From IMG/VR virus record IMGVR_UViG_3300047560_000921, positions 62,001-126,000 of that record: 64,000 nucleotides of DNA; one strand, 5' to 3'. Below, piece by piece: positions 35,026-52,102 of the stretch. Under the pieces are notes generated by a model. That model did not search any database, was not told where the DNA came from, and was given only the letters and a program-made list of their open reading frames with translations. Within the stretch, counting starts at the first letter, position 1. The number at the start of each line of letters is the position of its first letter. The translations under genes were made by a program, and so were the position numbers.

Positions 35026-35725
35026 TGTTATCTTCTTAAGCTACAACGAACAATATGCAGACCGTAACTATGAACGTCTGCTAGAAATTGCTCCACATGC
35101 AAAGCGAGTACACGGTGTTAAGGGTATATTAAACGCACACCAAGCTGCCGCACGTAAGAGCATGACTAACAACTTTTACATCGTTGATGCAGATGCGTAT
35201 ATAGTTGACGAGTTTGATTTTAGTTACACACCTACACAAAAGGAATTGATATACGGAAGAATCCCGTCAACTGATTGTGTATTCTGCTGGGCAAGCAAAA
35301 ATCCAATCAATGGATTAGAATACGGCTACGGCGGCGTTAAGTTGTTCCGTAAAGATTTATTGTTAGCTGTCACTGACTGGAGAGTTGACTTAGCAACCAG
35401 CATGGGTGCAGAGTTTGTTAGCAAGCCCGAAGTAAGTAACATCACGGCATTTAACACAGACGCTTATAGTACTTGGCGTAGTGCGTTTAGAGAATGTACT
35501 AAACTGGCTAGCGGTATAATTAGTGATGATGCTGTTACTGCTAGTAGACTCGATACGTGGTGCTCAGTAGGAGCAGACGCTCAATGTGGATCGTATGCTA
35601 TTGCAGGTGCAATAGCAGGCAAAGACTACGGAACTTTGAATAAAGATAACGTAGAAGCACTTAAATTAATTAACGACTTTGATTGGTTATATGATAGATT
35701 TAAACAACATTACCCAAACGTCTAA
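35018..35725 (+). CDS. Glycosyltransferase-like (GT-A), family B copy 2
   Basis: DVIFLSYNE, HGVKGI..AH.AAA, VDAD, NGLEYGYGGVKLF, AFRECTKL, INDFDWL. Confidence 0.7.
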   Translation: MLDVIFLSYNEQYADRNYERLLEIAPHAKRVHGVKGILNAHQAAARKSMTNNFYIVDADAYIVDEFDFSYTPTQKELIYGRIPSTDCVFCWASKNPINGLEYGYGGVKLFRKDLLLAVTDWRVDLATSMGAEFVSKPEVSNITAFNTDAYSTWRSAFRECTKLASGIISDDAVTASRLDTWCSVGADAQCGSYAIAGAIAGKDYGTLNKDNVEALKLINDFDWLYDRFKQHYPNV

Positions 35726-37775
35726 GTTCAATGTAATATTTGTTAATCAGCCGTACACAGACATAGAGCTAGCCGAAATGTGTAATGGCAAAACAACATG
35801 GTTTGTTAACGGTGAAATACAAGACGCAGAAGTATTTGACGGATTTGACTGGGGGTTCACACCAGTGGGCTACGAGTCAAAAAACTTGCACATGTGGGTA
35901 TGGCCAGACAGGAGCTTTTGGTTAGCTAAATTGATTCCTGCCAGATGGGACCTAGGTTATGTGCAATATATTACCGAACCAAAACGTAGAGTTACAGTTA
36001 GTACATATTACAACGGTGATGCACAATCTATGCTAGAGTATTTGCCGCCTACATACGATTTGAAATACGAACATGTTTGGTTATTTGACGTTACAACAAC
36101 AGACGGCAATGACATAGAGGCAGTTAGAATATCTTATGTTTCCGAGCCACAAGGCTTAAAAATCGTAGATAAAACTACAAAAAATGTCTTTAATTTAGTT
36201 AAAAATCCTGCCCTGCCTGACAGGGCATACGTAGGCATAGACACCAGCAACAAATTCCACTATAGTCAAGGAAAGTATAGACATGTATGGAACTTGGGCG
36301 GAGATGTTACCCTGCCTAATTATGACGTATGGGCTTATAGTTTAGAACCTGCTACATTTGTGGGTACAGTAGTAGAAGGCAAATTGGAAGTAACTGATTT
36401 TTACAAAGATATGACATGGGAAGTCAATCCGTTATTTGAAAATATTAAGTTTGCCGATTTCAATTTTGACTACAAGCCCTTGGCAGACAAAATGAATCTA
36501 GTACATACGTGGTACCTAGACTCTAGCTACACACCTCCAGGCGAACGTATATGGGCAGTTAGATTAACTCCTACTAACAGTTGCATGGGAGAGCTGGACA
36601 TGGGCCAACTTAGTTTAAACTTAACACCTAAAGTCATAGTGAACCCAGACTTCCAGTTGTATGATTGGAACAACGTTGTTAGCAAGTTCACACCCAGCTA
36701 CGATAGTTTGCAGTTTTTACATGTATGGTATTGCGAAGGAACAGATAAGAAGTACGGCGTTAAGATATCCTTTACAGATACAACAACAGGATACAAAGAG
36801 CATGGCTATGCTCGCCCATTTATGACAGAATGGAGCATGGGCCCGGGCGACACCAAACTGTATTGGCATTTTGATAAAGACTGTTACCCTGTTCCGCAGT
36901 GGAACAGAAAGTTTATGCCAGCTAGAGGTAATGAGTCTAAGGTGCATGTGTTTACGATGACTAATCCCAAGACTGGCCGTGTAACAGATTGGACAGGATG
37001 TTACCTTGTACCTAACGGTGTAGTACTTACAGACAAACTACGTAAGTCAGCAGTTAAGTGCTTTGAGCATGGCTGCACCGAGCAAGAGTTTGATATTGTG
37101 TTTTTAAGCAATGGCGAACCATATGCAGACGCAAACTTTGCCAAGCTAGAAAAGTTAGTACATGATAAGTCTAAGCTACACAGGGTAGATAGAGTTAAAG
37201 GTATCCTGGAAGCACACAAGGCCGCCGCCGATATTGTTACTACGGAAATGTTTTACCTAGTAGATGCAGACTGCGTCATTGAGGGTAGCTTTGCATTTGA
37301 CTTATATCCTAAATCCCATGACCGGGACACTGTATATGTTTGGCATGTACGTAACCCTGTCAACGGTTTAACATATGGATATGGTGGCGTAAAATTATTC
37401 CCCACACAGTTATTAAGAGACACTAAAGAATGGAAAATAGACTTAGCTACAAGCATTGGGGCAAAGTTTAAAGTATTGCCTAGAACAATAGGCTCTACAG
37501 AGTTTAACTGCGATCCGGAAACAGCATGGCGTAGTGGATTTAGAGAAGCAGCTAAACTTGCCAGCAAGATTATTAAAAATCAAGTTGATGCAGAAACAGA
37601 TCGTCGACTTGAAACATGGTGTACAGTTGATTTAGGTGTACCCAACGGAGAACATGCTATGCAAGGAGCACAGTGTGGCCGCACATGGGCACAAAACCAT
37701 CCTAGTTTAATTGATAAAATTAACGACTTCGAATGGTTACACAAACAATGGTTAAATTATGTTACTACAGAGTAA
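35691..37775 (+). CDS. Repeat-containing protein with C-terminal family B glycosyltransferase domain (start uncertain)
   Basis: C-terminal FDIVFLS.GEP, VDAD, NGLTYGYGGVKLF, GFRE..KL, INDFEWL; N-terminal H[VMT]W repeats. Confidence 0.7.
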   Translation: MIDLNNITQTSKFNVIFVNQPYTDIELAEMCNGKTTWFVNGEIQDAEVFDGFDWGFTPVGYESKNLHMWVWPDRSFWLAKLIPARWDLGYVQYITEPKRRVTVSTYYNGDAQSMLEYLPPTYDLKYEHVWLFDVTTTDGNDIEAVRISYVSEPQGLKIVDKTTKNVFNLVKNPALPDRAYVGIDTSNKFHYSQGKYRHVWNLGGDVTLPNYDVWAYSLEPATFVGTVVEGKLEVTDFYKDMTWEVNPLFENIKFADFNFDYKPLADKMNLVHTWYLDSSYTPPGERIWAVRLTPTNSCMGELDMGQLSLNLTPKVIVNPDFQLYDWNNVVSKFTPSYDSLQFLHVWYCEGTDKKYGVKISFTDTTTGYKEHGYARPFMTEWSMGPGDTKLYWHFDKDCYPVPQWNRKFMPARGNESKVHVFTMTNPKTGRVTDWTGCYLVPNGVVLTDKLRKSAVKCFEHGCTEQEFDIVFLSNGEPYADANFAKLEKLVHDKSKLHRVDRVKGILEAHKAAADIVTTEMFYLVDADCVIEGSFAFDLYPKSHDRDTVYVWHVRNPVNGLTYGYGGVKLFPTQLLRDTKEWKIDLATSIGAKFKVLPRTIGSTEFNCDPETAWRSGFREAAKLASKIIKNQVDAETDRRLETWCTVDLGVPNGEHAMQGAQCGRTWAQNHPSLIDKINDFEWLHKQWLNYVTTE

Positions 37776-38583
37776 AGACTTATTATACGGACTAGACGAG
37801 TACATTACAGTACAAACAAATCCTAAGTTGTTCAGAGCAATCTACAACTACATACATCATAAAAGTACAGAAAACAGGAATGCTATAGCAGATGGCGTTC
37901 CGTACATGTTACGCACTAAAACTTTAGCGACCTTGGATAGACTTGATAACAATGATACAGACGTAGACGTACTAATTGATTTGTTTTTAACTTGTCATGC
38001 AGTTGATGCAAAGTTTATTAGTAACCTGCGTACAGCAGTAAAAGAATTTCCAGAAGTTAATTGGCGCGATGGCCTGAGCAGATTCCAAATGCAAAGTAAG
38101 GTATGGGCCGCAAACATCTTAAAGAGCTATGACTTGGGTAATGTATATTTGTGTGGCGGCTGGATAGGGACACTAGCCCGTGTAATATTTGATGTATCTA
38201 AGTCAACTGCTACTATTACTAGCTTTGACATAGACGATGTTGCCAATAAAGCTAGCATGATACTAAATCTAGAATTAGCTAGTTCGGGTAAGTATGCGGC
38301 AGTAAATCAAGACATATACACTTTAGATTACACAGTTCCTGACACAGTAGTAAACACTATCTGTGAACATGTACCAGACTTCCAGCGCTGGCTGGATATG
38401 ATTCCTAGCGGCAAGTTAGTGTTATTGCAAACAAACAATATGTTTGAAATGACAGACCATGTAAATTGTGTAGAAACTTTAGAAGAATTTAAAACGCAAT
38501 GCCAGGACGTTGACATTGCGTATTCGAATACAATCAGTTATGCTGGGTGGCACAGATTTATGATTGTTGGAGTTAAACGTTAA
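37759..38583 (+). CDS. Class I SAM-dependent methyltransferase-like
   Basis: LCGGWIG (motif I-like), SFDID, NTICEH, RFMIVG. Confidence 0.6.
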   Translation: MLLQSKDLLYGLDEYITVQTNPKLFRAIYNYIHHKSTENRNAIADGVPYMLRTKTLATLDRLDNNDTDVDVLIDLFLTCHAVDAKFISNLRTAVKEFPEVNWRDGLSRFQMQSKVWAANILKSYDLGNVYLCGGWIGTLARVIFDVSKSTATITSFDIDDVANKASMILNLELASSGKYAAVNQDIYTLDYTVPDTVVNTICEHVPDFQRWLDMIPSGKLVLLQTNNMFEMTDHVNCVETLEEFKTQCQDVDIAYSNTISYAGWHRFMIVGVKR

Positions 38584-38888
38584 CCAATGTAAACGTCAAA
38601 CTGGCAGTTGTTAGTAGTACACCACTCGTCCATTAACATACCGCGTTGAATCATCAAGTCTTCGTTAACGTTAACAAAGTCTCGCAGGTCGTTGTCATTT
38701 GTAAACTCTAAAGTAACTGTACTAGTTAACCTATCCTCGCTTACTTCAACTCGTGTACCTACGAACCCGTCGTGCTCCATGGCCCGATTACGCATCTGTT
38801 CCATAATGGGATGATCCCTGTATTCTGCGAAAAAGAACTCAACATCTGGACTAGGTCTTTTCATAATAGTAATGATTTTAATGCTCAT
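38580..38888 (-). CDS. Small hypothetical protein (possible ferredoxin-like/ABM-like fold)
   Basis: AGGAG RBS and its own TAAATA at 38907-38912. Confidence 0.65.
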   Translation of the reverse strand: MSIKIITIMKRPSPDVEFFFAEYRDHPIMEQMRNRAMEHDGFVGTRVEVSEDRLTSTVTLEFTNDNDLRDFVNVNEDLMIQRGMLMDEWCTTNNCQFDVYIG

Positions 38889-38909
38889 TGCTGTCTCCTA
38901 ATGTGTTAT

Positions 38910-39536
38910 TTAGTTTATCAAATGTTCGGCATCTTTTAAGACGGATACTTCGGGATCGTGTTCGGACTTTAGTGTGTAGCTTTTTATAATAACTGGGGTA
39001 GGATTTCTGCCCTCTAGAATCCCTAAAATATTACTGCCGAATTCATACTTTGCCCTGCTATACGGTGGTACGATTTCTACAATTTTTACATCGTATAAAT
39101 GATTTCTACTTTCGGGCCCAAGTCGATGTATACCTTTTACTGTACTTTTTGTGTGCTGGTAGTCTCTTGCCATGTAGCATACCTTCCGTCCAAAGTTATT
39201 TGCACTGTCCAGGAATACTGGAGTTAGAAACTCGTTAATTACATGCAAGTTTTCTTTTAGCATAGAAAACTTATGCCTGTCGGCAAACACATTGCCTATA
39301 GTAGCGTAAGGCATACTAGACCAATGAGACCTGGTAACAAACATAGACATTTCTTCCTGCTCATTAAACCAACCCCATGCGCTATGTCCCAGCTCATTAT
39401 TAGCACTGATGTTAAATGATTTTCTAAAGTATTGGTCAATAGCAGTAGTAATCTTAACTTTCATGTTAGACCCGTGCGCTTGATATATTTCAAGCATACG
39501 TGGCAAGTCGGCACTAGTGAGTTTGCGTACACTCAT
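38910..39536 (-). CDS. GNAT-like protein, paralog A
   Basis: VRKLTSADL..MLEI start; collinear with 43558..44175. Confidence 0.5.
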   Translation of the reverse strand: MSVRKLTSADLPRMLEIYQAHGSNMKVKITTAIDQYFRKSFNISANNELGHSAWGWFNEQEEMSMFVTRSHWSSMPYATIGNVFADRHKFSMLKENLHVINEFLTPVFLDSANNFGRKVCYMARDYQHTKSTVKGIHRLGPESRNHLYDVKIVEIVPPYSRAKYEFGSNILGILEGRNPTPVIIKSYTLKSEHDPEVSVLKDAEHLIN

Positions 39537-40603
39537 AGATAGTCGGTGATGTTAATATTGTCAACAAATTCAAACTTGTCAGTAATAAAGTTATGGACAC
39601 GGCGATATCTAAACACACCTGGCAAGCTAGGGAATTTAGTCTTACGTGCAAGATAGTCTTCGTCTTTAGACAATTTGTAAATTAGTTCTTTAGCAGGGAA
39701 TTTGTAACTAACCCATGTATCTTTGATTTTACTATTGGGATTGTTCAAACTCCATTGTTGCCATTCTTCGCCTGCCCAAAAGTGACATACATGCCTATCC
39801 ATCCATGCATCGTCAATATTCTGCGAATCGTTCTTGTGACTTAAAATACGGAACTCTACTGCCTGCCACTTCATTGCAAAGTTCTGATACCACAAGTAGT
39901 CACTCCATGTTTTAATTTCCCAGGGGCAGTTTTTAATGAGCAGTTCCATTTGATCCAAGAACCACTTAGTGCGCTCTTCGTTACCAATCCTGGCATTAAA
40001 GAAATCAAAGGCAAACACTTTATAGTTGCTGTTGATTACAGATTCTGTGCCAAAGAAGTCGATGCTAGACTTTAATGTTAAGCTACCAAATACGTTATCT
40101 GCAAACTCACCAGTGATAACATAGTTGAAGCTGTTGAAGTAATTCTCAAAGCTATTGGAACTTTCTGTCTTGTAGTTACGCTTAATAACAGTTTCGTACA
40201 AGGTAGGATTTTCCTGTATACTATTGCTGTTTAAGATAATTAGCAATCGTTCTTTGAATTCTTTACTAGCATAGGTATGCATTATGTTTACAATTAGCGT
40301 ACTATCGATGCCCCCGCTATACATAATAACAGGTCTTAGATGTGTAGTCCTAACGTGTTGTTCAATCTTTTGCCATGTTAAGTAACATAGTTCTTCGAAC
40401 GTGTGCGTAAACGTTCTTACTTGAGGCATGGGATGCCTGTTAACTAGGTTAACAGGAAACTTAATAGTATTAGTTCTATCTACTAAGCTGATGCCACTGT
40501 TAAATGCTTTACTGAATACACTGTACTTGTCTAAAGCAGGGTATTGTTTACACCATTCTGGCTTGTATAAATCTAACTGGTTGTAATAAAGTAGTGCGCT
40601 CAT
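39533..40603 (-). CDS. Asparagine-synthetase C-terminal-like adenylating enzyme (no glutaminase domain)
   Basis: MYSGGIDST PP-loop and ITGEFADNVFG (AsnB GEGADE.FG motif); K..AK..I motif. Confidence 0.75.
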   Translation of the reverse strand: MSALLYYNQLDLYKPEWCKQYPALDKYSVFSKAFNSGISLVDRTNTIKFPVNLVNRHPMPQVRTFTHTFEELCYLTWQKIEQHVRTTHLRPVIMYSGGIDSTLIVNIMHTYASKEFKERLLIILNSNSIQENPTLYETVIKRNYKTESSNSFENYFNSFNYVITGEFADNVFGSLTLKSSIDFFGTESVINSNYKVFAFDFFNARIGNEERTKWFLDQMELLIKNCPWEIKTWSDYLWYQNFAMKWQAVEFRILSHKNDSQNIDDAWMDRHVCHFWAGEEWQQWSLNNPNSKIKDTWVSYKFPAKELIYKLSKDEDYLARKTKFPSLPGVFRYRRVHNFITDKFEFVDNINITDYL

Positions 40604-41220
40604 AGTAAAATATTCAAAAATGTCTCTTTGTGTAAGTTATCCATAACTTGTTTAACTTCGTTGGCAGTAGTTGCAGCCTTTAACAGTCTTAGGTATTTGA
40701 TTCTAAACCATTCAGTCTTTGTCATCATTTCCAAGTGCATGGTATACTGTAAAATGATTTGGTCAGCCGCTTGCTCTGCGGTGCAGTTGTCTAGCTCTGC
40801 ATAGTCTAATACTAATTGTACATTACTCAAGCCGACTAAGTTTGCATCATAGCCGTGTGTCCTGAGTAGTACAGCCTGGTCGTATTTCATTTTGTATACT
40901 TCGTCTTGGCCGGCACATACTTCTATTTCCTTAACTCTAGCTAGATTAATCTTAGTAAGGATATCATAGTAGCTCCATTGCTTGTACTCGACGAACTTGC
41001 GATATTCGTCGATGTTTTCGCCCGGACTGTATACTATTTTAGATCCACGTAAAATAAAATCACTAGGGTTAGATTTAAATTGCTGTTCTAGTGACTTATC
41101 TAAGTCTCCTGTATATACGTGCGTATCAAAGAAACATTCGTTAACAAAATATAAATGTTTCTTCTCTGGTGTAGAAAGCAAAACCCGATTAAGGCTGTTA
41201 GTTAATATGTGTACCCACAT
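40600..41220 (-). CDS. Hypothetical helical protein, weakly like tail-fibre assembly proteins
   Basis: GQDEVY..KY.QA...YA......EQAADQI...R......AATT.NEV pattern. Confidence 0.45.
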   Translation of the reverse strand: MWVHILTNSLNRVLLSTPEKKHLYFVNECFFDTHVYTGDLDKSLEQQFKSNPSDFILRGSKIVYSPGENIDEYRKFVEYKQWSYYDILTKINLARVKEIEVCAGQDEVYKMKYDQAVLLRTHGYDANLVGLSNVQLVLDYAELDNCTAEQAADQIILQYTMHLEMMTKTEWFRIKYLRLLKAATTANEVKQVMDNLHKETFLNILL

Positions 41221-41231
41221 GTCTGTCTCTC

Positions 41232-42779
41232 TTATAAATTTAAAAGTCTGTTTTTATAAAGCTGGAACCATTCTGCTTTTTTGTCTTTAAGGAAGTCTGC
41301 ACTAACGTTTTTAACGCTCACGCCTGCTAAGTCGTCGGCAGTAAGTCCAGTACCGTTCATCCACATAAACTGGAAGAACCCTGCAGGCTTAATACGACCG
41401 CTACGATATCCGCGCATAATATATTCGTCTGCAATAGCCCATGCCTTAGGTAAAGTCATATGCGGATTGCTCCACATGCTCCATCTAAAGAAGCTGTTGT
41501 TAGCAACACCTTTGTTGACGATGTTATATCCGTAAGATTCGGGATCAGCTTCGAACTTGCTAGGCCAGATTTTCTTTTCGTTAATGTTGAAGCCCAAAGG
41601 TTCAACTGTATATCCGTCTAGTGGACAGTTTTCGTCTTCGACCCACTTCATCCATTCGCGGAATGTTTCTTCCGTTTCGTGCGGCAAGCCTACAATAAAC
41701 CCACTGCTCATTGTAATGTCTTTGCCCCATGCTTCGTCTCGCAACCAGTGTAATAGTTCTTTGCTTTTCTCTGGGTGCAGTCCTTTGCCAATGGCTAACG
41801 CACTCTTATGGTTTAAACTTTCTAATCCAAATACACAGGTTTTAAGTCCGCTTTCTTTTAGCAGGGGTGCCATGTCCCTATTAGCATGGATTAAATCATG
41901 TCTTAGGTATGCACTAAACTGTATCTTAAAAGGAAGTTGTGAAAAGACTTCGTTGTATAGCTTTTCTACTTTATAGATGCTGTCGTTGTATGTATCGTCT
42001 GCAAAGATATAGTTAGTAATGCCCCACTTTTCGTAGTTACGAATGAACTCTTCTTTTAACGGCGCACTATCCTTGATGTAGTCGAACTTGTCTTTGCCGT
42101 TCATAGGAAAACTACAAAAGTCGCATCTAAAGATACATCCACGACTAATTTCAATGGGCAACACTTCGTTTTCGTAGATTAAGTCATTGTCTTCCCATAG
42201 TACTTGACTGGTTTGAAAATTCCACTCAGGGTCTTTAATCCAATCGACTTCAACTTGATGCTCGTTGATAGGAACCATTTTAAGTACAGTTTCGTCGTAA
42301 GGCTTACCTGCCAAGAAGTTAGCGTACTCTACTGTAGTATGGTCAGCATAGCCATGAATGAAGCAGTCTACTAGTTTACTGTTCTTGTATTGGCTACGTT
42401 GCCCGCCTAGTACAATTTTTGTCTTGGGATTTACTTGTTTGATATGATTAATAAACGCATAACTGACTTCAGGCTTAAACGGAAAGTCTTCAGTATATCT
42501 TAATTCGCGCCTATAGTGGTTAGGCCTACTTTTATCGCTTAGTGCTTGGTCTCTGATAGCATACAAGGTGCTACTGAATCCAACGAATAATGTGTTAGGA
42601 CCTACAAACTTGTCTACAATTTGTTTAAGCTCGTCCAAGCTCCATTCGGTTAAGTAGTCGACAACTTGTACTGTATAACCGTTCTTTCTTAATTCCGTAG
42701 CAATGCGATAAGCACCTAGTAGGCGCTGAAAAACCGTAGTGCTAGTGAACTCCGTAAAAATTACAATGTCTGCTGTCAT
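41232..42779 (-). CDS. Cobalamin-binding-domain radical SAM enzyme
   Basis: LGAYRIAT.LR.NGY.VQVVD, VGFS, IVLGG (B12 domain); EISRGCIFRCDFC; FADDT; FGLES; FIVGLPHET. Confidence 0.9.
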   Translation of the reverse strand: MTADIVIFTEFTSTTVFQRLLGAYRIATELRKNGYTVQVVDYLTEWSLDELKQIVDKFVGPNTLFVGFSSTLYAIRDQALSDKSRPNHYRRELRYTEDFPFKPEVSYAFINHIKQVNPKTKIVLGGQRSQYKNSKLVDCFIHGYADHTTVEYANFLAGKPYDETVLKMVPINEHQVEVDWIKDPEWNFQTSQVLWEDNDLIYENEVLPIEISRGCIFRCDFCSFPMNGKDKFDYIKDSAPLKEEFIRNYEKWGITNYIFADDTYNDSIYKVEKLYNEVFSQLPFKIQFSAYLRHDLIHANRDMAPLLKESGLKTCVFGLESLNHKSALAIGKGLHPEKSKELLHWLRDEAWGKDITMSSGFIVGLPHETEETFREWMKWVEDENCPLDGYTVEPLGFNINEKKIWPSKFEADPESYGYNIVNKGVANNSFFRWSMWSNPHMTLPKAWAIADEYIMRGYRSGRIKPAGFFQFMWMNGTGLTADDLAGVSVKNVSADFLKDKKAEWFQLYKNRLLNL

Positions 42780-43546
42780 TAAAGTCTTTTAAGTATAGGT
42801 AAGAAAATCATACACGGATCTAGTTCCCACCATTTTTCACCGAAGTTATAGTTAGCAGGATGCTTGTGATGGTTATTGTGCCAACCTTGTCCCCAAGCAA
42901 AGTATCCTAATAGCGGCACGTTGCGGCTATTATCGTCGATTTCATGATTCCTATATCCAAAGCCTTTAAGGTGGCAGAATAAGTTGATGCAAGCCTCTTG
43001 GTGTATGCCAGTAATCATGGGCAACAAGATTAAGCCAACTGCAAGTTGCCAGTTGAGTAATGCTGTAGCAATGATGATACCCCATACTATCTTATAGTAG
43101 TTAGTATGTACCCATACTTGGAATTTGTCACGTAATAAGTCTACGGCATATTTCAAGTTAACATCGGTTGGTGCAATTTTCCAACTCCAGCTAAGGTAAG
43201 CATGGAACTTGCCATGAATAGGACTGTGTATGTCTCTTGGTTTGTCAGAATGACTATGATGATATCCTCTGTGTAAAGCTACCCAGAAAATAGGACTGCC
43301 TTGTCCAGCCATGCATCCAAGTATAGTAATAACTTTTCTTGTAAACGCACTCATCTCTGGAATACACTTGTGACTAAGCACACGGTGTAATCCAATGGCA
43401 CTACCTAAACCACTAATTAAAACCCAGCCAACGGGCCAAAACCATAGGTACGACAAATCGCCCCATAGTACTAGTGCTGTTGCACCTAGCAAGGCCGCTA
43501 AGTGTACAGGCCAAAATAATTTAATGCTGTGTCCGGTAGTTTTCAT
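42779..43546 (-). CDS. Membrane acyl (delta-9-type) desaturase
   Basis: Three His boxes HRVLSH, HRGYHH, WHNNHH; DIHSP; hydrophobic segments. Confidence 0.9.
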   Translation of the reverse strand: MKTTGHSIKLFWPVHLAALLGATALVLWGDLSYLWFWPVGWVLISGLGSAIGLHRVLSHKCIPEMSAFTRKVITILGCMAGQGSPIFWVALHRGYHHSHSDKPRDIHSPIHGKFHAYLSWSWKIAPTDVNLKYAVDLLRDKFQVWVHTNYYKIVWGIIIATALLNWQLAVGLILLPMITGIHQEACINLFCHLKGFGYRNHEIDDNSRNVPLLGYFAWGQGWHNNHHKHPANYNFGEKWWELDPCMIFLPILKRL

Positions 43547-43551
43547 ATGCG

Positions 43552-43557
43552 TATTTA
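43552..43557 (-). promoter_or_regulatory. Late promoter TAAATA 5 nt before the desaturase ATG
   Basis: TAAATA-CGCAT-ATG; same spacing as at 10084 and 14028. Confidence 0.55.
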
Positions 43558-44175
43558 TTATTCTATCTCTTTGCGAAACTCTGGCTTTAAGTACTGCATA
43601 GTAACAACTAAGTCAGTGGGCCATAGTGCGCTGTTCATTAACCACATCCATTGGTCCAGGAACGGCGGCCTTGTGTTAGCGGGAATTACATTCATTACTA
43701 CGCTATCATAACGTTCCTGGCGTTGCTTAACATACTTGGGCCAAATGCGTTTGTGTGCAAGGTAGTAACGCTTAGGGTATGCCATAATGTACTGAAAGCA
43801 ATCACGCTTTTCTGCAAAGTCAATGGCGTGTTGCATTACTTCTACGAGTCCATTACGGTTACCTAAACTGGGCACACGTTCTGTTCTGCGAGTAATAGCT
43901 TTTTGTATGTACCACATGTTAACGTCAGGATTGAAGTACTGGGTCATGGCCGCATACAATTTGTTATCGTTAGTTTCGTCTACATATCCCCACATCATGA
44001 ACTGGGGATTATCTTCGCCTAAATATAAATTGGCAAGATTATTGTGCTTGTTCATGGACATGTCTGCCCTATAATAAGGAACACTGCTTACGTCAACACC
44101 AGCAAAGGTATTGTAGTCTCGCTGTATCTCATCGATTTGGTCAAAGTAACTAAGGTCAAGTTTTACGATTTTCAT
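43558..44175 (-). CDS. GNAT-like protein, paralog B
   Basis: IVKLD...I.EI, WGY.DE, AI.FAE, YD..V..VIPANTRP...LKPE. Confidence 0.5.
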   Translation of the reverse strand: MKIVKLDLSYFDQIDEIQRDYNTFAGVDVSSVPYYRADMSMNKHNNLANLYLGEDNPQFMMWGYVDETNDNKLYAAMTQYFNPDVNMWYIQKAITRRTERVPSLGNRNGLVEVMQHAIDFAEKRDCFQYIMAYPKRYYLAHKRIWPKYVKQRQERYDSVVMNVIPANTRPPFLDQWMWLMNSALWPTDLVVTMQYLKPEFRKEIE

Positions 44176-45107
44176 TCTAGTGTCTTAATAAAGTCTGTGG
44201 CTAACATTTCAAACCTATGGTCGTTATAAGGTATGTACTGTAGCATTTCTTGCTGAGCCTGTACGTTTAACAACTTCAATGTTTCGTACCCATGATACTT
44301 CTTTCTAGGTTTCAAGAAGAAGTACTTATTATATATGGAATACTTGCTACTTGCAATACTTAATTTACCAACTAGTTTATCTGCTAGCAAATCTTGTACA
44401 ATCGAATCGTTAACATAGGCTTTCATAATCTCAGGGGTGTAACTAAAGAACTCACTGATAACAGGGCGTTGGTTGAGTACACTGTACTTTGGTACACTCA
44501 AGTCATTATTTTCCCTAACATAATAAACCCAATTGTATTCTTGCTTTGGTTCATCAGCTAGCCACGATTTCCAGTTGAATACTTTTTCAAAGAATACTTC
44601 GCCTGTGCCTAGTACGGGAATATCGTCTTGGATTTTGTCTAGTGCCCACAAACATTGTATTTGTGCAAGTTGAATACTTTGATACTTCATACCAATTGGT
44701 ATGTACTCTTTACTACGATAAAACTCAACAATGTCTATCTCTAGGATTTTGTATTCTACGTTGTAGTAGTTACAAAAGTCTATGGCATACTTAATGTCGT
44801 GGTCATTGTATCCGTCCTTGAACCGAATAATAGTGGCACGAACACGTCGCTTTAGTCCTGCCCAAATAAATGCTTGAAGTACAAGTTCGCTGTCAATGCC
44901 GCCACTGAAGAATACATTAAACTTTTGCCCAGGGTATTTGTCTGCAAGCATTTTGCATACGTTAAGGCTTTCTTGTTTAAAATCTCCAACGGGACGGCTT
45001 GGTTTGCCCCAATGCATTTTAAATGTGCTGTAAGGATTCTTACGTAATGCAAAAGGAACGTTGTCGTAAGTCCAATGGAAGTGGTTGTTTTCTGTGTACT
45101 GGATCAT
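44172..45107 (-). CDS. PP-loop (asparagine-synthetase-like) adenylating enzyme
   Basis: FFSGGIDSE, YA..FC, VLGTGE, R.KYHGYE. Confidence 0.7.
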   Translation of the reverse strand: MIQYTENNHFHWTYDNVPFALRKNPYSTFKMHWGKPSRPVGDFKQESLNVCKMLADKYPGQKFNVFFSGGIDSELVLQAFIWAGLKRRVRATIIRFKDGYNDHDIKYAIDFCNYYNVEYKILEIDIVEFYRSKEYIPIGMKYQSIQLAQIQCLWALDKIQDDIPVLGTGEVFFEKVFNWKSWLADEPKQEYNWVYYVRENNDLSVPKYSVLNQRPVISEFFSYTPEIMKAYVNDSIVQDLLADKLVGKLSIASSKYSIYNKYFFLKPRKKYHGYETLKLLNVQAQQEMLQYIPYNDHRFEMLATDFIKTLE

Positions 45108-45970
45108 TGTGTAAATGGAGGCATCTTATCAAATTCGTGGTCAATGCTGATACGTATAAAACTTCTACGCCCTTCACTGCCTTCTAAGATTTCCATATCT
45201 CCGCGTCTGTGTATTGTAGCCCAATTGTCAAATACTAGCACGTCATTGATTTCCCATTTGTGTTCTAGGAAGTCAGTTGCTTCGATTTGACTAGTGCTTA
45301 ACTCTCTCATGAATTCGTTTGAAAGGCGTAGTTCGCCTTCTTCTTTGTCTATGACTGTTCGTAAGATCCATGCGCCGTCATTGCCAAATGCATTATAACG
45401 TATAAACTCTTCGCCTGTCCATGGATGCTTGTCTAGTGCCGGATACCATTTTTGATTAGTAAAGTTTTTCTGCCAGCTATTGTACAAGAACTTTAAGTTG
45501 TCCAAGTTAATGTTATGCTTGTCCTTTTCAGTCCATTCTCGTCTAATGATACCTAAGTCTGCAACATCAGTGCTACCGCCAGTCATGTTAGTAGGTAAAT
45601 CCTTACAGTACAACAATCGGAATGGGAACGGCTCCAGGCCACGCTCATTGGCAATGTCACAGTGCCATGTAAGGCTCTTGTATAGTCTAGGATAGCTTTT
45701 ATCATCGTATTCTGTATATGCGACACCGTTGCTGGCAACCTTAAAATGTTCTTTAGTATGATTCTGATACATATCCGCAGTCCATGGGCGCCCGAACTTC
45801 TTACTAAATGCAGCCATTTCATCTGCACTTACATCTATGTTTTTAAACACTAAAGCCTTACGACGGTAAATTAATTCACGCAGTTCGATGTCGTCAAAAG
45901 CCATAATCTCGTCGAAGGTACCTTCTACAATGCTACCAACATCTTTTGTTATAGGAGTATGTTTAATCAT
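45104..45970 (-). CDS. TauD/TfdA-family dioxygenase
   Basis: LVFKN, WHCD, GGSTDVAD, HPWTG, HKWEINDVLVFDNWATIHRR; probable start ATG 45970. Confidence 0.85.
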   Translation of the reverse strand: MIKHTPITKDVGSIVEGTFDEIMAFDDIELRELIYRRKALVFKNIDVSADEMAAFSKKFGRPWTADMYQNHTKEHFKVASNGVAYTEYDDKSYPRLYKSLTWHCDIANERGLEPFPFRLLYCKDLPTNMTGGSTDVADLGIIRREWTEKDKHNINLDNLKFLYNSWQKNFTNQKWYPALDKHPWTGEEFIRYNAFGNDGAWILRTVIDKEEGELRLSNEFMRELSTSQIEATDFLEHKWEINDVLVFDNWATIHRRGDMEILEGSEGRRSFIRISIDHEFDKMPPFTQ

Positions 45971-45971
45971 A

Positions 45972-46565
45972 TTAGTAATCGTAAAATCTAGGGTTGTGGG
46001 CAACGTCGAAAATAATGTGCAGTCTATCCGTAGTGCCATTATTTCCACCCCAGTGTTTAGCTCTATTGTTAAAGCGCCACAGTTCGCCAGGTTTACATTT
46101 AATGCTTTCAGTTTCGGTTATGAACTCAACATCAGGATTAGTAGCCAGCACAATATGATACCTATTATGAATAGCAAAATACAGTCCGGGATCAACGTGC
46201 GGGTATATCTTACCGCCAGGCACTAGCTTTGAAACGTATGCTCTACCCAAATGGCCAGCTGGTATTAAAGTCATTGCATGTTCAATTAATTTTCTAACTT
46301 CGGGCAATTGCGTATAGTGTTCTGAGTCTACGATACTAATTGCATGTTGGTCTGCTAGGTCTTTTGCATCCCAGTGTTCCCCTTGATTCCTGCTTAAAAT
46401 TTCCGCAGGAGGATGAATACGCAAATGAATACTTTCGACTTCCTCTAACGCAGGGCTAATGGCTTTCACTTTGGTATGACTAGCAAACCAATCACTGTGT
46501 GCTAATACTTCTTCTAGCGCGGCTGTAACATCTATGTTAGATGCAATGTGGTCAAAATATATCAT
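45972..46565 (-). CDS. AspH-like hydroxylase
   Basis: LGRAYVSKLVPGGKIYPHVD...RYHIVL.TN...GELWRFNN...H...N....RLHIIFD. Confidence 0.85.
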   Translation of the reverse strand: MIYFDHIASNIDVTAALEEVLAHSDWFASHTKVKAISPALEEVESIHLRIHPPAEILSRNQGEHWDAKDLADQHAISIVDSEHYTQLPEVRKLIEHAMTLIPAGHLGRAYVSKLVPGGKIYPHVDPGLYFAIHNRYHIVLATNPDVEFITETESIKCKPGELWRFNNRAKHWGGNNGTTDRLHIIFDVAHNPRFYDY

Positions 46566-47116
46566 TTGTTGTAAGTAGAAAACACAAGATGCACTCTAGG
46601 TTTGAAACTGGCATTCAATGCAGTGTGCCAAACAGTGCTTACTAATGTATATAGTCTACCTTCCTCTTCCATTCTGTACAAGCCCTTCTCCGTGGCTATA
46701 AAATTATTAGGATTGGTGCTAATAGGGATATGATACCTAACTGCATCGCTGTCCTTGTGCCAACTATAACAAGTCTTTGGCCTTAATAACATAAGCCTAA
46801 TCCTACCAAGTGGCAACGGACTAACTTCTTGTACCTTGTTAATTACTTCTTCCCAATATCTTCCTTTTACATAAGAAGATATGTGAGTATAGTTTTCTTC
46901 TTGGTCTAGCTCTATGTTATTTTGTCTATCGTATAAGCTGCCAACACCGTCATACATTTGTTCTTTTATGGTATCAAATTTGCCGCTGTGACTTAAGGCA
47001 ATTTGATTAGCATCCTTGTGGAAAGGATATTGACGATACAGCACGTCTAGTTCTAGTTTTAACCGTATAGGGTCGAATTTAACGTCTAACTTTTGTACGT
47101 CTAGTGTATCGCTCAT
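46562..47116 (-). CDS. AspH-like hydroxylase
   Basis: GRIRLMLL.P..CYSWHKD...RYHIPI.TN...HTALN....RVHLV. Confidence 0.85.
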   Translation of the reverse strand: MSDTLDVQKLDVKFDPIRLKLELDVLYRQYPFHKDANQIALSHSGKFDTIKEQMYDGVGSLYDRQNNIELDQEENYTHISSYVKGRYWEEVINKVQEVSPLPLGRIRLMLLRPKTCYSWHKDSDAVRYHIPISTNPNNFIATEKGLYRMEEEGRLYTLVSTVWHTALNASFKPRVHLVFSTYNK

Positions 47117-47709
47117 ATAGTACTCGTATCGCCTTTGTATGTTACATTACTTATGTAACTCTTCTCATCGGCGATGTCCACCGCAAAAGCAATTACTTTA
47201 ACTAATTGACTTACAGACATAATACTGTTAGGCTGTCTAATTTGTGCGTAGGTATAAGTGCTAGTGTCTGTCAAGAAATCTGTTTTAACGTGTCCTGGCT
47301 TTACATTAATGATTTTACACTTGCAGCCAGCAGCCATATTCATTTGATAGCCTGCATCGTCTAATGCTTTCTTGTGTAGTCCGTAAGGGTATACTTTGCC
47401 CATGTGCATACATGCATCTCCTGCTAGACTACTGACATTGACAATCATGTAGTTGGGTTTCTTTTGATGAAAGCCGTACCAACGTTGTAGCAAGTCTACT
47501 TGTGCATACCTAAAGTACGCATTGTTGATAAACAAGTCGCAGTCCAGAGTTTCGTTTATAATACGCTCTTGGTCGTCACCCTTACTGATATCATAGCCAT
47601 TGGATCTACTGAACCCAATAACTTCAATACCTAGGCCTGTATAGTAGTCATATAGCGCCTTACCGATGCCTTTTGTGTGTCCCGTTATTGCTATCTTATT
47701 TGGAGTCAT
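47113..47709 (-). CDS. Short-chain dehydrogenase/reductase
   Basis: ITGHTKGIG, FINNA, NVSS, YGLHK (YxxxK), PG.VKT. Confidence 0.85.
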   Translation of the reverse strand: MTPNKIAITGHTKGIGKALYDYYTGLGIEVIGFSRSNGYDISKGDDQERIINETLDCDLFINNAYFRYAQVDLLQRWYGFHQKKPNYMIVNVSSLAGDACMHMGKVYPYGLHKKALDDAGYQMNMAAGCKCKIINVKPGHVKTDFLTDTSTYTYAQIRQPNSIMSVSQLVKVIAFAVDIADEKSYISNVTYKGDTSTI

Positions 47710-48313
47710 TGCATTGCTCGCATGTTATTTCTTTTAAGTATCCGATAAAGTCTAAATCGGAACCAGGTTTGAGTGGCATAGTTGCAACCCATTGGCAACA
47801 TTCTTGTGGCATATATCCGGGCGGCAATGGCCCGCATACACCTAACTTAGTGTCGTGCATTTTAAAGTTGTAGCCACCGTTGGCATTAACTAAGTCTATA
47901 AACTTACTGAAACTTCTTTGTTTGTCTTCCCTGCTAATGAACACGCAATCTAAATTTAAACTGCGGGCAACAGCTATTTGTCTAGGAATCAAATACGCAC
48001 TATTAACGTATCTGTCACTAGGTTCGAACTTCTGTAAATGTGTATGACGATACTTTGGTGGGATGTAAAATCTAGCACTAACTCTAGCTTTACCTGGACC
48101 CCATCTGTCCTGTTGAATTTGCATACCGCTAAAAGCTAAAACCTCACTACCGCGCAAGGCAACAGTGAGGCTGGCAAAGTCTTTAGGCTGGATTCCAACG
48201 TAATTGGCTTTTAGTTCATCATCTCCCAGTTGAATTTCTTCTACTACTTGATTGAACAATGCCAAATACGTTGTGTCTCTGCATAAGTCAGTTACAATTA
48301 CTTGTTCAGCCAT
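47696..48313 (-). CDS. GNAT-like acyltransferase
   Basis: LAFSG, ARVSARFYIPPKYR, Q..VAR.L..DCVFISRE. Confidence 0.55.
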   Translation of the reverse strand: MAEQVIVTDLCRDTTYLALFNQVVEEIQLGDDELKANYVGIQPKDFASLTVALRGSEVLAFSGMQIQQDRWGPGKARVSARFYIPPKYRHTHLQKFEPSDRYVNSAYLIPRQIAVARSLNLDCVFISREDKQRSFSKFIDLVNANGGYNFKMHDTKLGVCGPLPPGYMPQECCQWVATMPLKPGSDLDFIGYLKEITCEQCNDSK

Positions 48314-49185
48314 TTCTCAGTGAACTCTCGAATCTCTCGTTGACCCATACCGTACTGCTTGGCAATACCGTTAACATCACGGAAGTCTTCTAGTAGGTTC
48401 AGCCACTTTTCTTCGCTAAGTAGACGTTTAATCAAATCAACCTCCATGCGACTGCATGTTACACTGTGTTGTTCGTAATCTTCGAAGGCCTCGCACACTT
48501 GAGGGAATAGTGCCTTAACCAAGTTGTACATAGCATTGGCAAGTTCTCTAATCTCCCATTGGGCATGAGGATCAGCACGTAGGCGAACCATATGCAAGAA
48601 GTTCTTCATGTTAGCTTTCCAGTATAGCTCGGTATATCCGCCAACTGGTAATACCATACGACTAAGTTCACGGGCAACACCGTCACCGTCTTTACCTAGT
48701 AGGTATTCGTAGTCCTTGAAGCTATTGTTGTAAGCTCTCATGAACGCATGTTGATAGTCCTGACGTTGTGCTGTGTCCCACCCGTCGAACTCTTCGCGTC
48801 CTTGCTTGTTTAATGTGCTTTGTGGTGCAATTTGATTAAGTTCGGGAATGTAAAACTCATCGGTCATTACGCTGTAACGTGCGCTGTATTCGTTAATACT
48901 AGCAGTACGATGACGTACAAGTTGGCGCATAACAAAGATAGGTACCTTAATGTGGAATTTAACTTCGCACATTTCAAACGGTGTAGTGTGCTTGTGACGC
49001 ATCAAGTAACGAATCAAGTTTCTATCATCGCTTACTTGCTTAGTGCCTTCGCCGTAACTTACTCGTGCGGCTTGTACTACTGCCGCATCGTTGCCCATAT
49101 GGTCAACAAGTCCTACAAAGCCATGGTCCAATAAAGGAACATACGTTTTGTCATTTTCAAAATCAATATCACTTCTTAGTGTCAT
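48298..49185 (-). CDS. thyX: Flavin-dependent thymidylate synthase ThyX
   Basis: AARVSY, H.TPFE, RHRTASINEYSARY signature, HAQWEIR; probable start ATG 49185. Confidence 0.95.
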   Translation of the reverse strand: MTLRSDIDFENDKTYVPLLDHGFVGLVDHMGNDAAVVQAARVSYGEGTKQVSDDRNLIRYLMRHKHTTPFEMCEVKFHIKVPIFVMRQLVRHRTASINEYSARYSVMTDEFYIPELNQIAPQSTLNKQGREEFDGWDTAQRQDYQHAFMRAYNNSFKDYEYLLGKDGDGVARELSRMVLPVGGYTELYWKANMKNFLHMVRLRADPHAQWEIRELANAMYNLVKALFPQVCEAFEDYEQHSVTCSRMEVDLIKRLLSEEKWLNLLEDFRDVNGIAKQYGMGQREIREFTEKWLNK

Positions 49186-49495
49186 CTGTGTCTCCGCCGC
49201 CTTCAAAATGTTTTGCTAGCAATGTGCTAACATACTTTTTCATGTGTTTCTTAATCCTAGTCAAGTCCATGGTAATCTCTACGTCGGTAACCATGTCCTT
49301 GGTCTCGATAAGACCTTCTTCTTGTAGTTTGTCTGGTAAGCTGTCTAGCTTTGCTATTTCTTTTCCAGTGAACCTAATAGTTTGTCCAGTAACTAAGTGA
49401 ACTAGCACTTCTTCGATGTACTCGGCAGGTACATGATTCATAACAACATCATCTAGGATGTCGTCAAAGCCACGATCTTTTCTTCTAATAGCCAT
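49169..49495 (-). CDS. Hypothetical protein
   Basis: 108-aa ORF packed within the operon. Confidence 0.65.
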   Translation of the reverse strand: MAIRRKDRGFDDILDDVVMNHVPAEYIEEVLVHLVTGQTIRFTGKEIAKLDSLPDKLQEEGLIETKDMVTDVEITMDLTRIKKHMKKYVSTLLAKHFEGGGDTDDTKK

Positions 49496-50539: not shown

Positions 50540-50800
50540 TTAGTGTGTCTTGCTATTAAAGCTAGCTATAATATTTAGCTCTGATGGAGGCTGTGTCGAT
50601 TGTTCTAACAATTCGCTCCATGCGCTAAGTTGCAGTAAGAAGCTGTCTTCAGCTTCCTGTAGTTCAATTACTGCTTTTCCGTTCAACACAAAAACGGAAA
50701 AAGGCCCTGTGGCATTCAGGGCCAGATAGTCTTTAGCGATCCAGACTATATTGCTGAGATGGTTCTCATCGTGAGCACTTATCGTAAAGCGCCAGCTCAT
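50540..50800 (-). CDS. Hypothetical protein
   Basis: Start overlaps the stop of the vWA gene. Confidence 0.55.
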   Translation of the reverse strand: MSWRFTISAHDENHLSNIVWIAKDYLALNATGPFSVFVLNGKAVIELQEAEDSFLLQLSAWSELLEQSTQPPSELNIIASFNSKTH

Positions 50801-52044: not shown

Positions 52045-52072
52045 TGTATAGTGCTCCTAACTATTTAATATG

Positions 52073-52102
52073 TATTATACACTAATTCTGAATTAATGTC
52101 AA
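52073..52102 (-). promoter_or_regulatory. sigma70-type early promoter
   Basis: TTGACA-N17-TATAAT. Confidence 0.85.

Follow-up and report, generated by a model that had tools for sequence, protein, structure and literature searches.

A PP-loop, GNAT-fold and desaturase gene unit shared by phages and bacteria lies at the core of a jumbo phage tailoring cluster

Introduction

What would a bacteriophage build or modify with thirteen packed genes, most of which resemble tailoring enzymes, and on what substrate would these enzymes act? The question is posed by a stretch of 64,000 nucleotides from a 231-kb IMG/VR jumbo myophage contig (IMGVR_UViG_3300047560_000921); this whole stretch, at its full length, is called the window below. 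A sequence-only reading had drawn attention to positions 38580–48313 as a functionally linked cluster of phage tailoring enzymes, laid out as thirteen packed minus-strand genes. Thirteen open reading frames (ORFs), all on the minus strand, indeed stand there in the gene order that had been given. Seven of their junctions are overlaps of 1–14 nt, mostly ATGA, and three are gaps of 11, 11 and 21 nt. Such packing by itself is ordinary for phages. The functional link is borne out by comparative data: a core of the cluster co-occurs over 35 viral groups, and some of its members are naturally fused. We found that the conserved unit consists of a PP-loop enzyme (PPA), a GNAT-fold protein (GNL) and a membrane desaturase, preceded in some lineages by an acyl-carrier-protein (ACP)-like gene, and that a protein labelled as helical in the earlier reading (HEL) and another PP-loop enzyme (PPB) make a second conserved pair. 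Both are present in phages and in bacteria.

Results

Core enzymes of the cluster

The core is encoded by three adjacent genes.

44172–45107, minus strand: PP-loop enzyme A (PPA), 311 aa, with an SGGIDS motif; the anchor of the conserved core.
43558–44175, minus strand: GNAT-fold protein 1 (GNL), 205 aa; a core member.
42779–43546, minus strand: putative integral-membrane delta-9 desaturase of the SCD1/DesC type, 255 aa; a core member.

PPA matches the NadE profile (E 1e-6). Its AlphaFold2 model (pLDDT 91.4) has NadE, beta-lactam synthetase, AsnS and LarE as top Foldseek matches in the PDB (E ~1e-6), and each of these adenylates small-molecule carboxylates. Since the TM-scores against the best PDB matches are just 0.3–0.4, the shared part is the PP-loop core. 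The SGGIDS sequence stands at residue 68 in PPA and at residue 96 in PPB and is invariant across both families; both proteins thus carry the SGGxDS loop of PP-loop ATP pyrophosphatases of the NadE/AsnB/LarE branch. No GATase match was obtained for PPA (311 aa) or PPB (356 aa), so neither is asparagine synthetase B proper, a protein of ~550 aa with a class II glutaminase; both are AsnB-like synthetase domains only. From the model, PPA is predicted to be a carboxylate-adenylating ATP pyrophosphatase. In a set of 1.84 billion representative proteins its family amounts to 610 clusters (E ≤ 1e-30), and the close viral structure matches are all 'uncharacterized'.

The AlphaFold2 model of GNL, made from a 14-sequence alignment (pLDDT 83.6), was recognized by Foldseek as a GNAT fold, with matches to RimI, AAC(6') and SpeG (E 3e-7, TM-scores 0.5–0.6). 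Its PDB matches at E ≤ 1e-3 number 245, the listed ones all belonging to the GNAT-family acyltransferases. Neither GNL nor its paralogue at 38910–39536 is matched by Pfam or NCBIfam. The two proteins thus have the GNAT fold, GNL by its model and the other as its paralogue, yet cannot be filed as canonical CoA-dependent acetyltransferases. Sequence and profile searches against the PDB gave nothing for GNL, for the protein encoded at 47696–48313 or for the GT-A domain of a neighbouring gene block (see below), and matched PPB at its PP-loop only.

The desaturase is the best recognized of the three. It scores 48.7 bits with Pfam FA_desaturase (E 1e-12; cut-off 29.7) and aligns over its full length, residues 8–250, with the human stearoyl-CoA desaturase structure 4zyo (E 3e-14). 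Its His boxes read HRVLSH, HRGYHH and HNNHH, and it has two strongly hydrophobic segments; among the 13 proteins no other has such membrane-spanning-like segments, save for one borderline stretch in the short-chain dehydrogenase/reductase (SDR). By these features the protein belongs to the delta-9 acyl-CoA/acyl-lipid desaturase type, while its activity and regiospecificity are predicted. The family is rare in phages: 3 of 50,697 records match, two of them being bacterial-looking MD-2021a contigs. One of these records, CAKLQH020000002.1 (L019, 'Acinetobacter phage MD-2021a'), has trpB, trpC, btuB, baeSR and aidB around the desaturase match, as a bacterial chromosome would. 'Acinetobacter phage MD-2021a' was accordingly set aside as a context for desaturase matches.

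Conservation in viral relatives

A profile scan of IMG/VR yielded 51 loci (numbered with the prefix L), which fall into 35 groups at less than 70% PPA identity. Families were counted in these groups by jackhmmer, so that the following counts may take in distant superfamily members.

Desaturase: 28 of 35 groups (80%), in up to four copies.
GNL: 26 of 35 groups.
PPA, GNL and desaturase together: 24 of 35 groups.
AspH-family hydroxylase: 19 of 35 groups.
B12-type radical SAM enzyme: 11 of 35 groups.
PPB: 10 of 35 groups.
HEL: 6 of 35 groups.
TauD-family dioxygenase: 6 of 35 groups.
ThyX: 3 of 35 groups.
SDR: 2 of 35 groups.

PPA is adjacent to GNL in 19 groups and GNL to the desaturase in 18, and HEL is adjacent to PPB in all 6 groups that have it. 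Fusions join PPA to GNL (P0262, P0337), AspH to PPA (P0382) and PPA to its paralogue PPA' (P0253, P0254); these natural fusions appear to link PPA, the GNAT-like protein and AspH to one pathway.

How much of the cluster is kept depends on the distance of the relative. The close relatives (67–97% protein identity) have all 13 genes in unchanged order. Relatives L016–L018 (53–59%) lack the SDR and have genes for dihydrofolate reductase (DHFR) and ThyA at the position where ThyX sits here. Only ThyX, a true GNAT, PPA, GNL, desaturase, HEL, PPB and a PPA paralogue remain in L012–L014 (~38%), where AspH, TauD, radical SAM and SDR genes are all absent. PPA, GNL, desaturase, HEL and PPB are accompanied by a Rieske oxygenase in L042, and the core by three extra desaturases in L043. 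The expectation of the sequence-only reading that the genes should co-occur in related phages thus holds for the core (24 of 35 groups) and fails for the accessory genes. The 13 genes are a mosaic and not one fixed unit, with SDR, TauD, AspH and the B12 radical SAM enzyme as lineage-specific additions. L008 and L009 were dropped as carriers of the pathway, of which they share only the radical SAM enzyme.

When the whole cluster was compared by megablast with 50,697 phage records, there were zero matches, and tblastn of the radical SAM enzyme, PPA, PPB and TauD against deposited phages found zero homologues (AspH, SDR and the GNAT-like proteins were not searched there). Published phages thus had no annotated neighbourhood to offer. 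PHROGs matches were limited to the desaturase and one AspH, plus two marginal ones (E > 0.001) for PPA; each of the matched families lacks an assigned function. The cluster matches no characterised pathway, and the searched proteins, save the desaturase, have no homologue in deposited phages. Our literature search found no account of a conserved ACP/PP-loop/GNAT-fold/desaturase unit.

An acyl-carrier-protein-like gene upstream of PPA in relatives

The cluster contains no nonribosomal peptide synthetase (NRPS), polyketide synthase (PKS) or ACP gene. That it lacks a scaffold-building or carrier gene, as the sequence-only reading had remarked, is correct for the window and does not extend to the relatives. 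A search for precursor peptides near the core brought up just one recurrent small ORF, which belongs to a family of 72–82 aa with an invariant LDSLDI(V/I)ELQ sequence. The ORF overlaps the PPA start in L015, L055, L056, L065 and L093 and is a C-terminal domain in L078. Aligned by hhalign with E. coli AcpP, its profile reaches a probability of 92.7% (E 4e-7, 43% identity), with the DSL serines aligned. We classify it on this basis as acyl-carrier-protein-like, with phosphopantetheinylation predicted. The gene order at such loci is ACP, PPA, GNL, desaturase.

The HEL–PPB pair and its neighbours

Downstream of the radical SAM gene lie the second conserved pair, a second GNAT-fold gene and a small ORF.

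40600–41220, minus strand: HEL, 206 aa, the 'helical protein' of the sequence-only reading; partner of PP-loop enzyme B.
39533–40603, minus strand: PP-loop enzyme B (PPB), 356 aa, similar to the C-terminal synthetase part of AsnB, with no glutaminase domain.
38910–39536, minus strand: GNAT-fold protein 2, 208 aa, a fast-evolving GNL paralogue.
38580–38888, minus strand: 102-aa ORF, accessory, with a late-type motif of its own.

HEL matched no family in the profile libraries or PHROGs. It stands directly upstream of PPB in 6 of the 6 viral groups that have it, and also in the bacteria of the candidate phyla radiation (CPR) at L039 and L040 (E 2e-26 and 5e-22), and appears to be an obligate partner of PPB. 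PPB itself carries the motifs SGGIDS and TGEFADNVFGS; a few of its distant homologues bear Pfam Asn_synthase or the JGI name AsnB. Across the PP-loop it aligns with PPA (hhalign E 2e-6), and the two each form a family of their own, that of PPB with 181 matches.

GNAT-fold protein 2 matches the GNL family of L012/L014 (5e-6) and aligns with GNL in the GNAT-like alignment A1. It is only 47–55% identical among close relatives, versus 75–97% for the neighbouring genes, and its site is a fast-evolving and possibly specificity-determining position. In L012–L014 this position is occupied by a PP-loop paralogue. The 102-aa ORF has no significant family match, is found in just 2 of the 35 viral groups and is not ACP-like. 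For these last two reasons it was dropped as a candidate carrier or precursor.

The module in bacteria

Among the bacterial MAG contigs compared, an alphaproteobacterial one of 257 kb carries PPA and PPA' with a GNAT, a desaturase domain, a 221-aa gene and a homologue of PPB, amid ordinary bacterial genes. A Bdellovibrio contig has the B12-type radical SAM enzyme, TauD, two desaturases, PPA and GNL, next to genes for a pyridoxal-phosphate-dependent decarboxylase, a spermine-synthase-like protein, an aminotransferase, a carbamoyltransferase with SxtJ and an S8 peptidase. Two CPR bacteria carry HEL and PPB, one of them also PPA; rpsJ and tuf adjoin the module there, and either YcaO with a nitroreductase or MbnB/TglH lies in the vicinity. 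In bacterial loci the gene after PPA encodes its paralogue, which is fused or adjacent to an Acetyltransf_1 GNAT. A phosphoribosyltransferase/beta-propeller fusion was also seen beside PPA or HEL–PPB in CPR and other bacteria (L039 5579–9122, L040 1617–11098, L030 5246–7009, L035 4891–6525).

A virion protein, one of the substrates proposed in the sequence-only reading, is not the general substrate, because the module occurs in bacteria without phage virion genes nearby.

Accessory genes

The remaining genes of the cluster are mostly redox and methylation-type enzymes.

47696–48313, minus strand: first gene of the cluster, 205 aa, Cys-rich C-terminus; the earlier label 'GNAT' was not verified.
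47113–47709, minus strand: short classical SDR oxidoreductase, 198 aa; accessory.
46562–47116, minus strand: AspH-family Fe(II)/2-oxoglutarate hydroxylase b, 184 aa.
45972–46565, minus strand: AspH-family hydroxylase a, 197 aa.
45104–46048, minus strand: TauD/TfdA-family Fe(II)/2-oxoglutarate dioxygenase (TauD E 7e-24, 85.7 bits).
41232–42779, minus strand: radical SAM enzyme, 515 aa; accessory.

Eleven of the 13 family labels of the sequence-only reading hold up. The other two, 'GNAT' for 47696–48313 and 'helical protein' for HEL, correspond to proteins that matched no family. The product of 47696–48313 had no match in Pfam, NCBIfam, PHROG or PDB, and its relationship to the two GNAT-like proteins was rejected (hhalign probability 0.2%). 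A weak relative is present in L010, and an unrelated, true Acetyltransf_1 GNAT takes its place in L012/L014.

The SDR narrowly exceeds the adh_short cut-off (28.3 versus 26.6 bits), contains TGHTKGIG and YGLHK and has many NCBIfam SDR matches. Both AspH proteins match Asp_Arg_Hydrox, b with an HKD motif (E 8e-7, 29.5 bits) and a with an HVD motif (E 4e-16, 59.7 bits) and a weak match to LpxO (1.3e-4). Together with TauD they have the marks of Fe(II)/2-oxoglutarate oxygenases, namely Pfam scores above cut-off and HxD, the distal His having been located by eye. The N-terminal part of TauD resembles ScoE (4e-11). The true TauD start is probably the ATG at 45970 (288 aa) and not the GTG at 46048, because the relatives encode 289–290 aa. 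The radical SAM enzyme scores above cut-off with Radical_SAM (E 6e-16, 59.4 bits) and has CIFRCDFC as its CxxxCxxC motif. Its B12-binding domain scores 20.8 bits, below the cut-off of 32.1; the best NCBIfam matches (PhpK, the ladderane-lipid radical SAM enzyme, HpnJ, BchE) are all B12-dependent, each far below its family cut-off. It is probably a cobalamin-dependent (class B) radical SAM enzyme. In L010, at 7533–19624, homologues of it and of an N_Twi radical SAM enzyme were observed with UDP-glucose dehydrogenase, a phosphoribosyltransferase, two QueC-like PP-loop genes, a carbamoyltransferase and a family 1 glycosyltransferase (GT1).

Every catalytic motif expected of the cluster enzymes is in place: CxxxCxxC, the three His boxes, HxD, TGxxxGxG with YxxxK, and two instances of SGGxDS. 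For the accessory enzymes, the closest curated relatives (LpxO, ScoE, the ladderane-lipid radical SAM enzyme, HpnJ and 3-oxoacyl reductases) have lipids or fatty-acid-derived compounds as their substrates.

TAAATA motifs

Two copies of the hexamer TAAATA lie in the cluster.

43552–43557, minus strand: TAAATA, 5 nt upstream of the desaturase ATG; kept in L002–L004 and L017.
38907–38912, minus strand: TAAATA, 19 nt upstream of the 102-aa ORF and followed by a GGAG ribosome-binding site; kept in L002–L004, L011 and L017.

TAAATA is 3.4-fold depleted in the window (22 copies versus 75 ± 8 expected), and about 12 of the 22 copies stand 5–40 nt upstream of an ATG. The sites include 870, 14028, 26761, 27451, 29589, 38907, 43552, 52062 and 59518. 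Both cluster sites are kept in relatives despite diverged flanks; L003 reads TATAAATA. These features support TAAATA as the core of a T4-like late promoter, a motif that the rest of the window would avoid. The role of the 43552 copy for the desaturase gene is less certain, as just 5 nt separate it from the ATG and it overlaps the stop codon of the preceding gene. The late-type motif that the sequence-only reading had placed at 43552 is thus real and conserved; the role in morphogenesis attached to it is not supported.

Genomic setting

Genes for a baseplate wedge, a lysozyme-bearing hub, a virion protein of 3042 aa, DNA ligase and ThyX mark the window as phage DNA. The baseplate wedge shares ~41% identity with its counterparts in the jumbo phages Atu_ph07, PA5oct and SCTP-2, and the phage is a Rak2/Atu_ph07-like jumbo phage, not a T4-like one. 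The GC content of the cluster (0.39–0.41) is inside the window's own range. We found no tRNA genes in the window, and promoter-like (sigma-70) and terminator-like sites there are no more frequent than expected by chance. The thyX gene (48298–49206, minus strand) overlaps the first cluster gene and encodes an ordinary Thy1 protein (200 bits). Thymidylate synthesis has been swapped non-orthologously at this place, with ThyX here and DHFR plus ThyA at L016 3317–4665 and L018 512–1872. Elsewhere in the window, an AAA (MoxR-like) ATPase gene lies beside a DUF2201 metallopeptidase/VWA-like gene (50800–53230, minus strand), a pair found at the same place in L012, L014 and L016, and a protein of the tail-fibre region contains a long run of GYG repeats (28531–29577, plus strand).

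Convergent with the cluster, at 29972–38583 on the plus strand and directly after tail-fibre-like genes, is a glycosylation-type block with five glycosyltransferase (GT)-like genes. It encodes two GT8-like proteins and three paralogous GT-A domains (DAD, YGxGGxK), one of which ends a 698-aa protein, together with an N_Twi radical SAM protein (320 bits) and a class-I methyltransferase-like protein; the GT8 and methyltransferase labels come from motifs identified by eye. The GT-A domains belong to a very abundant metagenomic family, a few members of which have Pfam Glycos_transf_2. The slot between two GT-A genes (33613–35025, plus strand) varies, being filled by the N_Twi radical SAM gene here and by Methyltransf_24 in L012/L014, and is empty in L004. 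The block is syntenic with Ralstonia phage RsoM2USA, whose genes there are all hypothetical and which lacks the minus-strand cluster. Genes for GT, N_Twi radical SAM and methyltransferase lie alongside PPA in 7 of 35 groups. Block and cluster were rejected as one unit, since each occurs separately.

Discussion

A possible route to fatty-acyl amides

We tentatively favour, at somewhat less than even confidence, the reading that the cluster encodes one pathway that would build or remodel a fatty-acyl amide-type small molecule or membrane lipid, carrier-protein- or CoA-borne, in the infected cell. It is favoured because lipids or fatty-acid derivatives are the substrates of the accessory enzymes' closest curated relatives, and of the substrates listed by the sequence-only reading a host lipid fits best. 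PPA and PPB would adenylate carboxyl groups, leading to amides, or else to thioesters or lactams. The GNAT-fold proteins would move an acyl group from an acyl-carrier protein or acyl-CoA onto an amine, and the membrane di-iron desaturase, working at the membrane, would put a double bond or oxygen into the acyl chain. Precedents for single steps are at hand: the GNAT-fold enzymes LuxI, FeeM and HlyC use acyl-ACP, and the AsnB homologue OxyD amidates a malonyl starter unit. In this phage lineage, hydroxyl, methyl and redox decorations may be added by the two AspH, TauD, B12-type radical SAM and SDR enzymes. As a carrier gene is missing from the window, this phage would draw on the ACP or acyl-CoA of its host. 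Late-promoter-like motifs stand before the 102-aa gene and at the head of the second cluster half, so that the product would probably be made late in infection. The phage might benefit through a remodelled envelope, by shutting out other phages or from a diffusible compound.

A broader proposal, which we consider rather unlikely as it stands, is that ACP, PPA, the GNAT-fold protein and the desaturase (with HEL and PPB) represent a new NRPS- and PKS-independent assembly system. PP-loop rather than ANL enzymes would activate carboxylates on or for a carrier, GNATs would form amides, and the products would be oxidised N-acyl amide lipids or lactam-like metabolites. The system would be used late in infection by jumbo and T4-like phages of freshwater bacteria and shared with Alphaproteobacteria, Bdellovibrionota and CPR bacteria.

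Several observations weigh against the fatty-acyl amide reading. All the chemistry proposed for the cluster is deduced from family membership, and three of the 13 proteins (47696–48313, HEL and the 102-aa ORF) have no family assignment. We know of no PP-loop enzyme in lipid assembly, and canonical AspH substrates are proteins. The best fold matches of GNL are generic protein and aminoglycoside acetyltransferases, not acyl-ACP users, and the position of the Q/RxxGxG/A acyl-CoA motif is not conserved in alignment A1. None of the window ORFs of at least 40 aa is ACP-like, and the CPR loci with PPA, HEL and PPB have no desaturase. The breadth of the jackhmmer families counts on the same side. Finally, PPA follows the GT block on the same strand in L057, L070 and L088, an arrangement that fits a glycoconjugate substrate too.

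Alternative explanations

A water-soluble, amino-acid-derived antimetabolite or lactam, following the logic of tabtoxin, clavams or carbapenems and with only an indirect role for the desaturase, as in the phaseolotoxin cluster, would suit the enzyme set (AsnB-like amide/lactam synthetase, 2-oxoglutarate oxygenase, GNAT, B12 radical SAM, SDR), much as thienamycin is made with ThnM, ThnK/L/P, ThnF and ThnG/Q. The fold of PPA is nearest to beta-lactam synthetase, AsnS and NadE, and the Bdellovibrio locus resembles a biosynthetic gene cluster. The tabtoxin cluster likewise combines beta-lactam-synthetase-like TblS with clavaminate-synthase-like TblC and a GNAT domain, and the phaseolotoxin cluster has two fatty-acid desaturase genes whose role is unexplained (PMC3927611). 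However, profile scans of the phage cluster recognized no crotonase, CEAS, ATP-grasp ligase, exporter or self-resistance gene, the desaturase is the most conserved partner, and the ACP-like carrier points to acyl chemistry; a lytic phage would also have no obvious gain from it late in infection. We regard such a product as unlikely, and slightly more unlikely still a role in tailoring envelope glycoconjugates (lipopolysaccharide (LPS), lipid A, capsule). Here the cluster and the adjoining GT/radical SAM/methyltransferase block would together change the surface of the host or decorate virions: PP-loop enzymes would amidate uronic or ulosonic acids, as AsnB-like WbpS-type enzymes do in making uronamides, and the GNATs would N-acylate amino sugars. 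Consistent with this is the position of the cluster, convergent with five GT-like genes by tail-fibre-like genes, as is the finding that GT, N_Twi radical SAM and methyltransferase genes accompany PPA in 7 of 35 groups and share its strand in the three loci named above. L010 joins UDP-glucose dehydrogenase to two QueC-like PP-loop genes, a carbamoyltransferase and GT1, a PAP2 phosphatase adjoins PPA in L033, and in Pelagibacter phage Mosig a desaturase, TauD and two AspH lie in a tail-fibre 'host recognition cluster' (PMC7029224). Against it, the two blocks come apart: RsoM2USA has the GT block without the cluster, and L042, L043 and the bacterial loci have the cluster without GTs. The window's cluster also lacks a sugar-nucleotide dehydratase, aminotransferase or nucleotidyltransferase, and sugar chemistry alone would leave the ACP and the SCD-type desaturase unexplained.

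Post-translational modification of a ribosomal peptide or protein, whether a ribosomally synthesized and post-translationally modified peptide (RiPP), a virion protein or the product of the 102-aa ORF, had been proposed by the sequence-only reading and now seems improbable. It draws on the protein substrates of classical AspH enzymes, on RimI and Nat enzymes among the best GNAT fold matches, on the AsnB-like enzymes that cyclise lasso peptides, on a weak match of the B12-type radical SAM enzyme to a RiPP C-methyltransferase family (7e-8), on YcaO with nitroreductase and MbnB/TglH near the CPR loci, and on the late-type motif and strong ribosome-binding site of the 102-aa ORF. Yet the claim for the 102-aa ORF is not upheld: it occurs in only 2 of 35 groups, and the gaps between the cluster genes, at most 21 nt, are too short to hide a precursor gene. 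No conserved precursor-peptide gene was found next to the modifying enzymes, as a RiPP cluster should have, the recurrent small ORF being ACP-like, and no leader peptidase or exporter was found; moreover, the commonest partner is a membrane acyl desaturase and the module exists in bacteria without phage structural genes nearby. Still less probable is a chance gathering of unrelated auxiliary genes in a hypervariable region, for example with a desaturase that tunes membrane fluidity alone, like the desaturases of cyanophages (vFADs). The region is a mosaic whose accessories vary by lineage, one of its genes evolves far faster than its neighbours, and active stand-alone phage desaturases are known (PMC5776448). 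For the core, this explanation is largely refuted by the order and adjacency of PPA, GNL and desaturase, which recur over 24 of 35 divergent groups and in bacteria, and by the PPA–GNL and AspH–PPA fusions. Hypermodification of DNA or nucleotides, suggested by the position next to thymidylate synthase, is very improbable. In its favour, thyX is the gene immediately before the cluster, with DHFR and ThyA in its place in relatives; the 7-deazaguanine modification of DNA involves PP-loop enzymes, QueC among them; and the related L010 has QueC-like genes and a phosphoribosyltransferase. But among the 13 cluster proteins searched against Pfam, NCBIfam and PHROGs there is no DNA-acting transferase, glycosylase, kinase or hydroxymethylase, nor a DpdA/TGT or DNA glycosyltransferase. 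ThyX is ordinary and present in 3 of 35 groups, an integral-membrane desaturase and an ACP are ill-suited to DNA chemistry, and the bacterial module sits in unrelated contexts.

Significance

Each enzyme comes from a known superfamily, and phage tailoring islands by tail-fibre genes have been noted before. What appears to be new is the ACP/PP-loop/GNAT-fold/desaturase unit with its fusions and its spread over phages and bacteria, and the chance that its chemistry is new as well is a real one. As a rule, an auxiliary gene of a phage stands for one enzyme that strengthens a host pathway. In the present case a whole multi-enzyme pathway appears to be spread over at least 35 divergent phage lineages, and no member of its conserved core has been characterised in any organism. 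Once identified, the product would give a function to several hundred protein clusters (610 for PPA alone) and could reveal a new NRPS- and ANL-free route to amide-linked lipids or metabolites. It would also show what the phage gains late in infection, be it envelope remodelling, rival-phage exclusion or a released molecule. With the comparative map of core and accessory genes, fusions and the ACP of relatives, the question becomes testable with three or four genes.

Comparison with known systems

Bacterial aminolipid and lipid A tailoring offers a parallel in enzyme types: OlsB is a GNAT-like N-acyltransferase, and OlsC and LpxO are AspH-family acyl 2-hydroxylases. The likeness is one of logic only, a carrier-dependent GNAT-fold N-acyltransferase being combined with AspH hydroxylases and membrane di-iron oxidases on an amide-linked lipid. 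AspH is soluble here, those pathways have no PP-loop counterpart, and among the cluster proteins the LpxO family and the two acyltransferase families of the ornithine-lipid pathway, OlsB (N-acyl) and OlsA (O-acyl), gave no match at cut-off (LpxO only E 1.3e-4). AsnB-like synthetases (beta-lactam synthetase, CarA/ThnM, TblS, OxyD, lasso cyclases) resemble PPA and PPB in their carboxylate-adenylating PP-loop domain and in the accompanying 2-oxoglutarate oxygenases, GNATs, B12 radical SAM enzymes and SDRs (for TblS, PMC3927611). Their N-terminal domain is, however, absent from PPA and PPB, and no crotonase, CEAS, ATP-grasp or precursor-peptide partner is seen here.

Among phages, the 'host recognition cluster' of pelagimyophages and cyanomyophages is similar as a variable island by the tail fibres with GTs, radical SAM cassettes, AspH, TauD, desaturase, acetyltransferase and carbamoyltransferase (PMC7029224). 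Its published reading, a proposal, is alteration of the LPS/O-chain (PMC7029224). Four of our cluster families have homologues in Pelagibacter phage Mosig (MT647606), which has none of PPA, PPB, GNL or HEL. Cyanophage vFADs, delta-9 desaturases active on C16 acyl chains, share with our locus a phage-borne DesC/SCD-type membrane desaturase with three His boxes (PMC5776448). They have been described as stand-alone auxiliary genes, whereas the desaturase described here is locked in a PP-loop/GNAT-fold/desaturase unit that bacteria carry as well.

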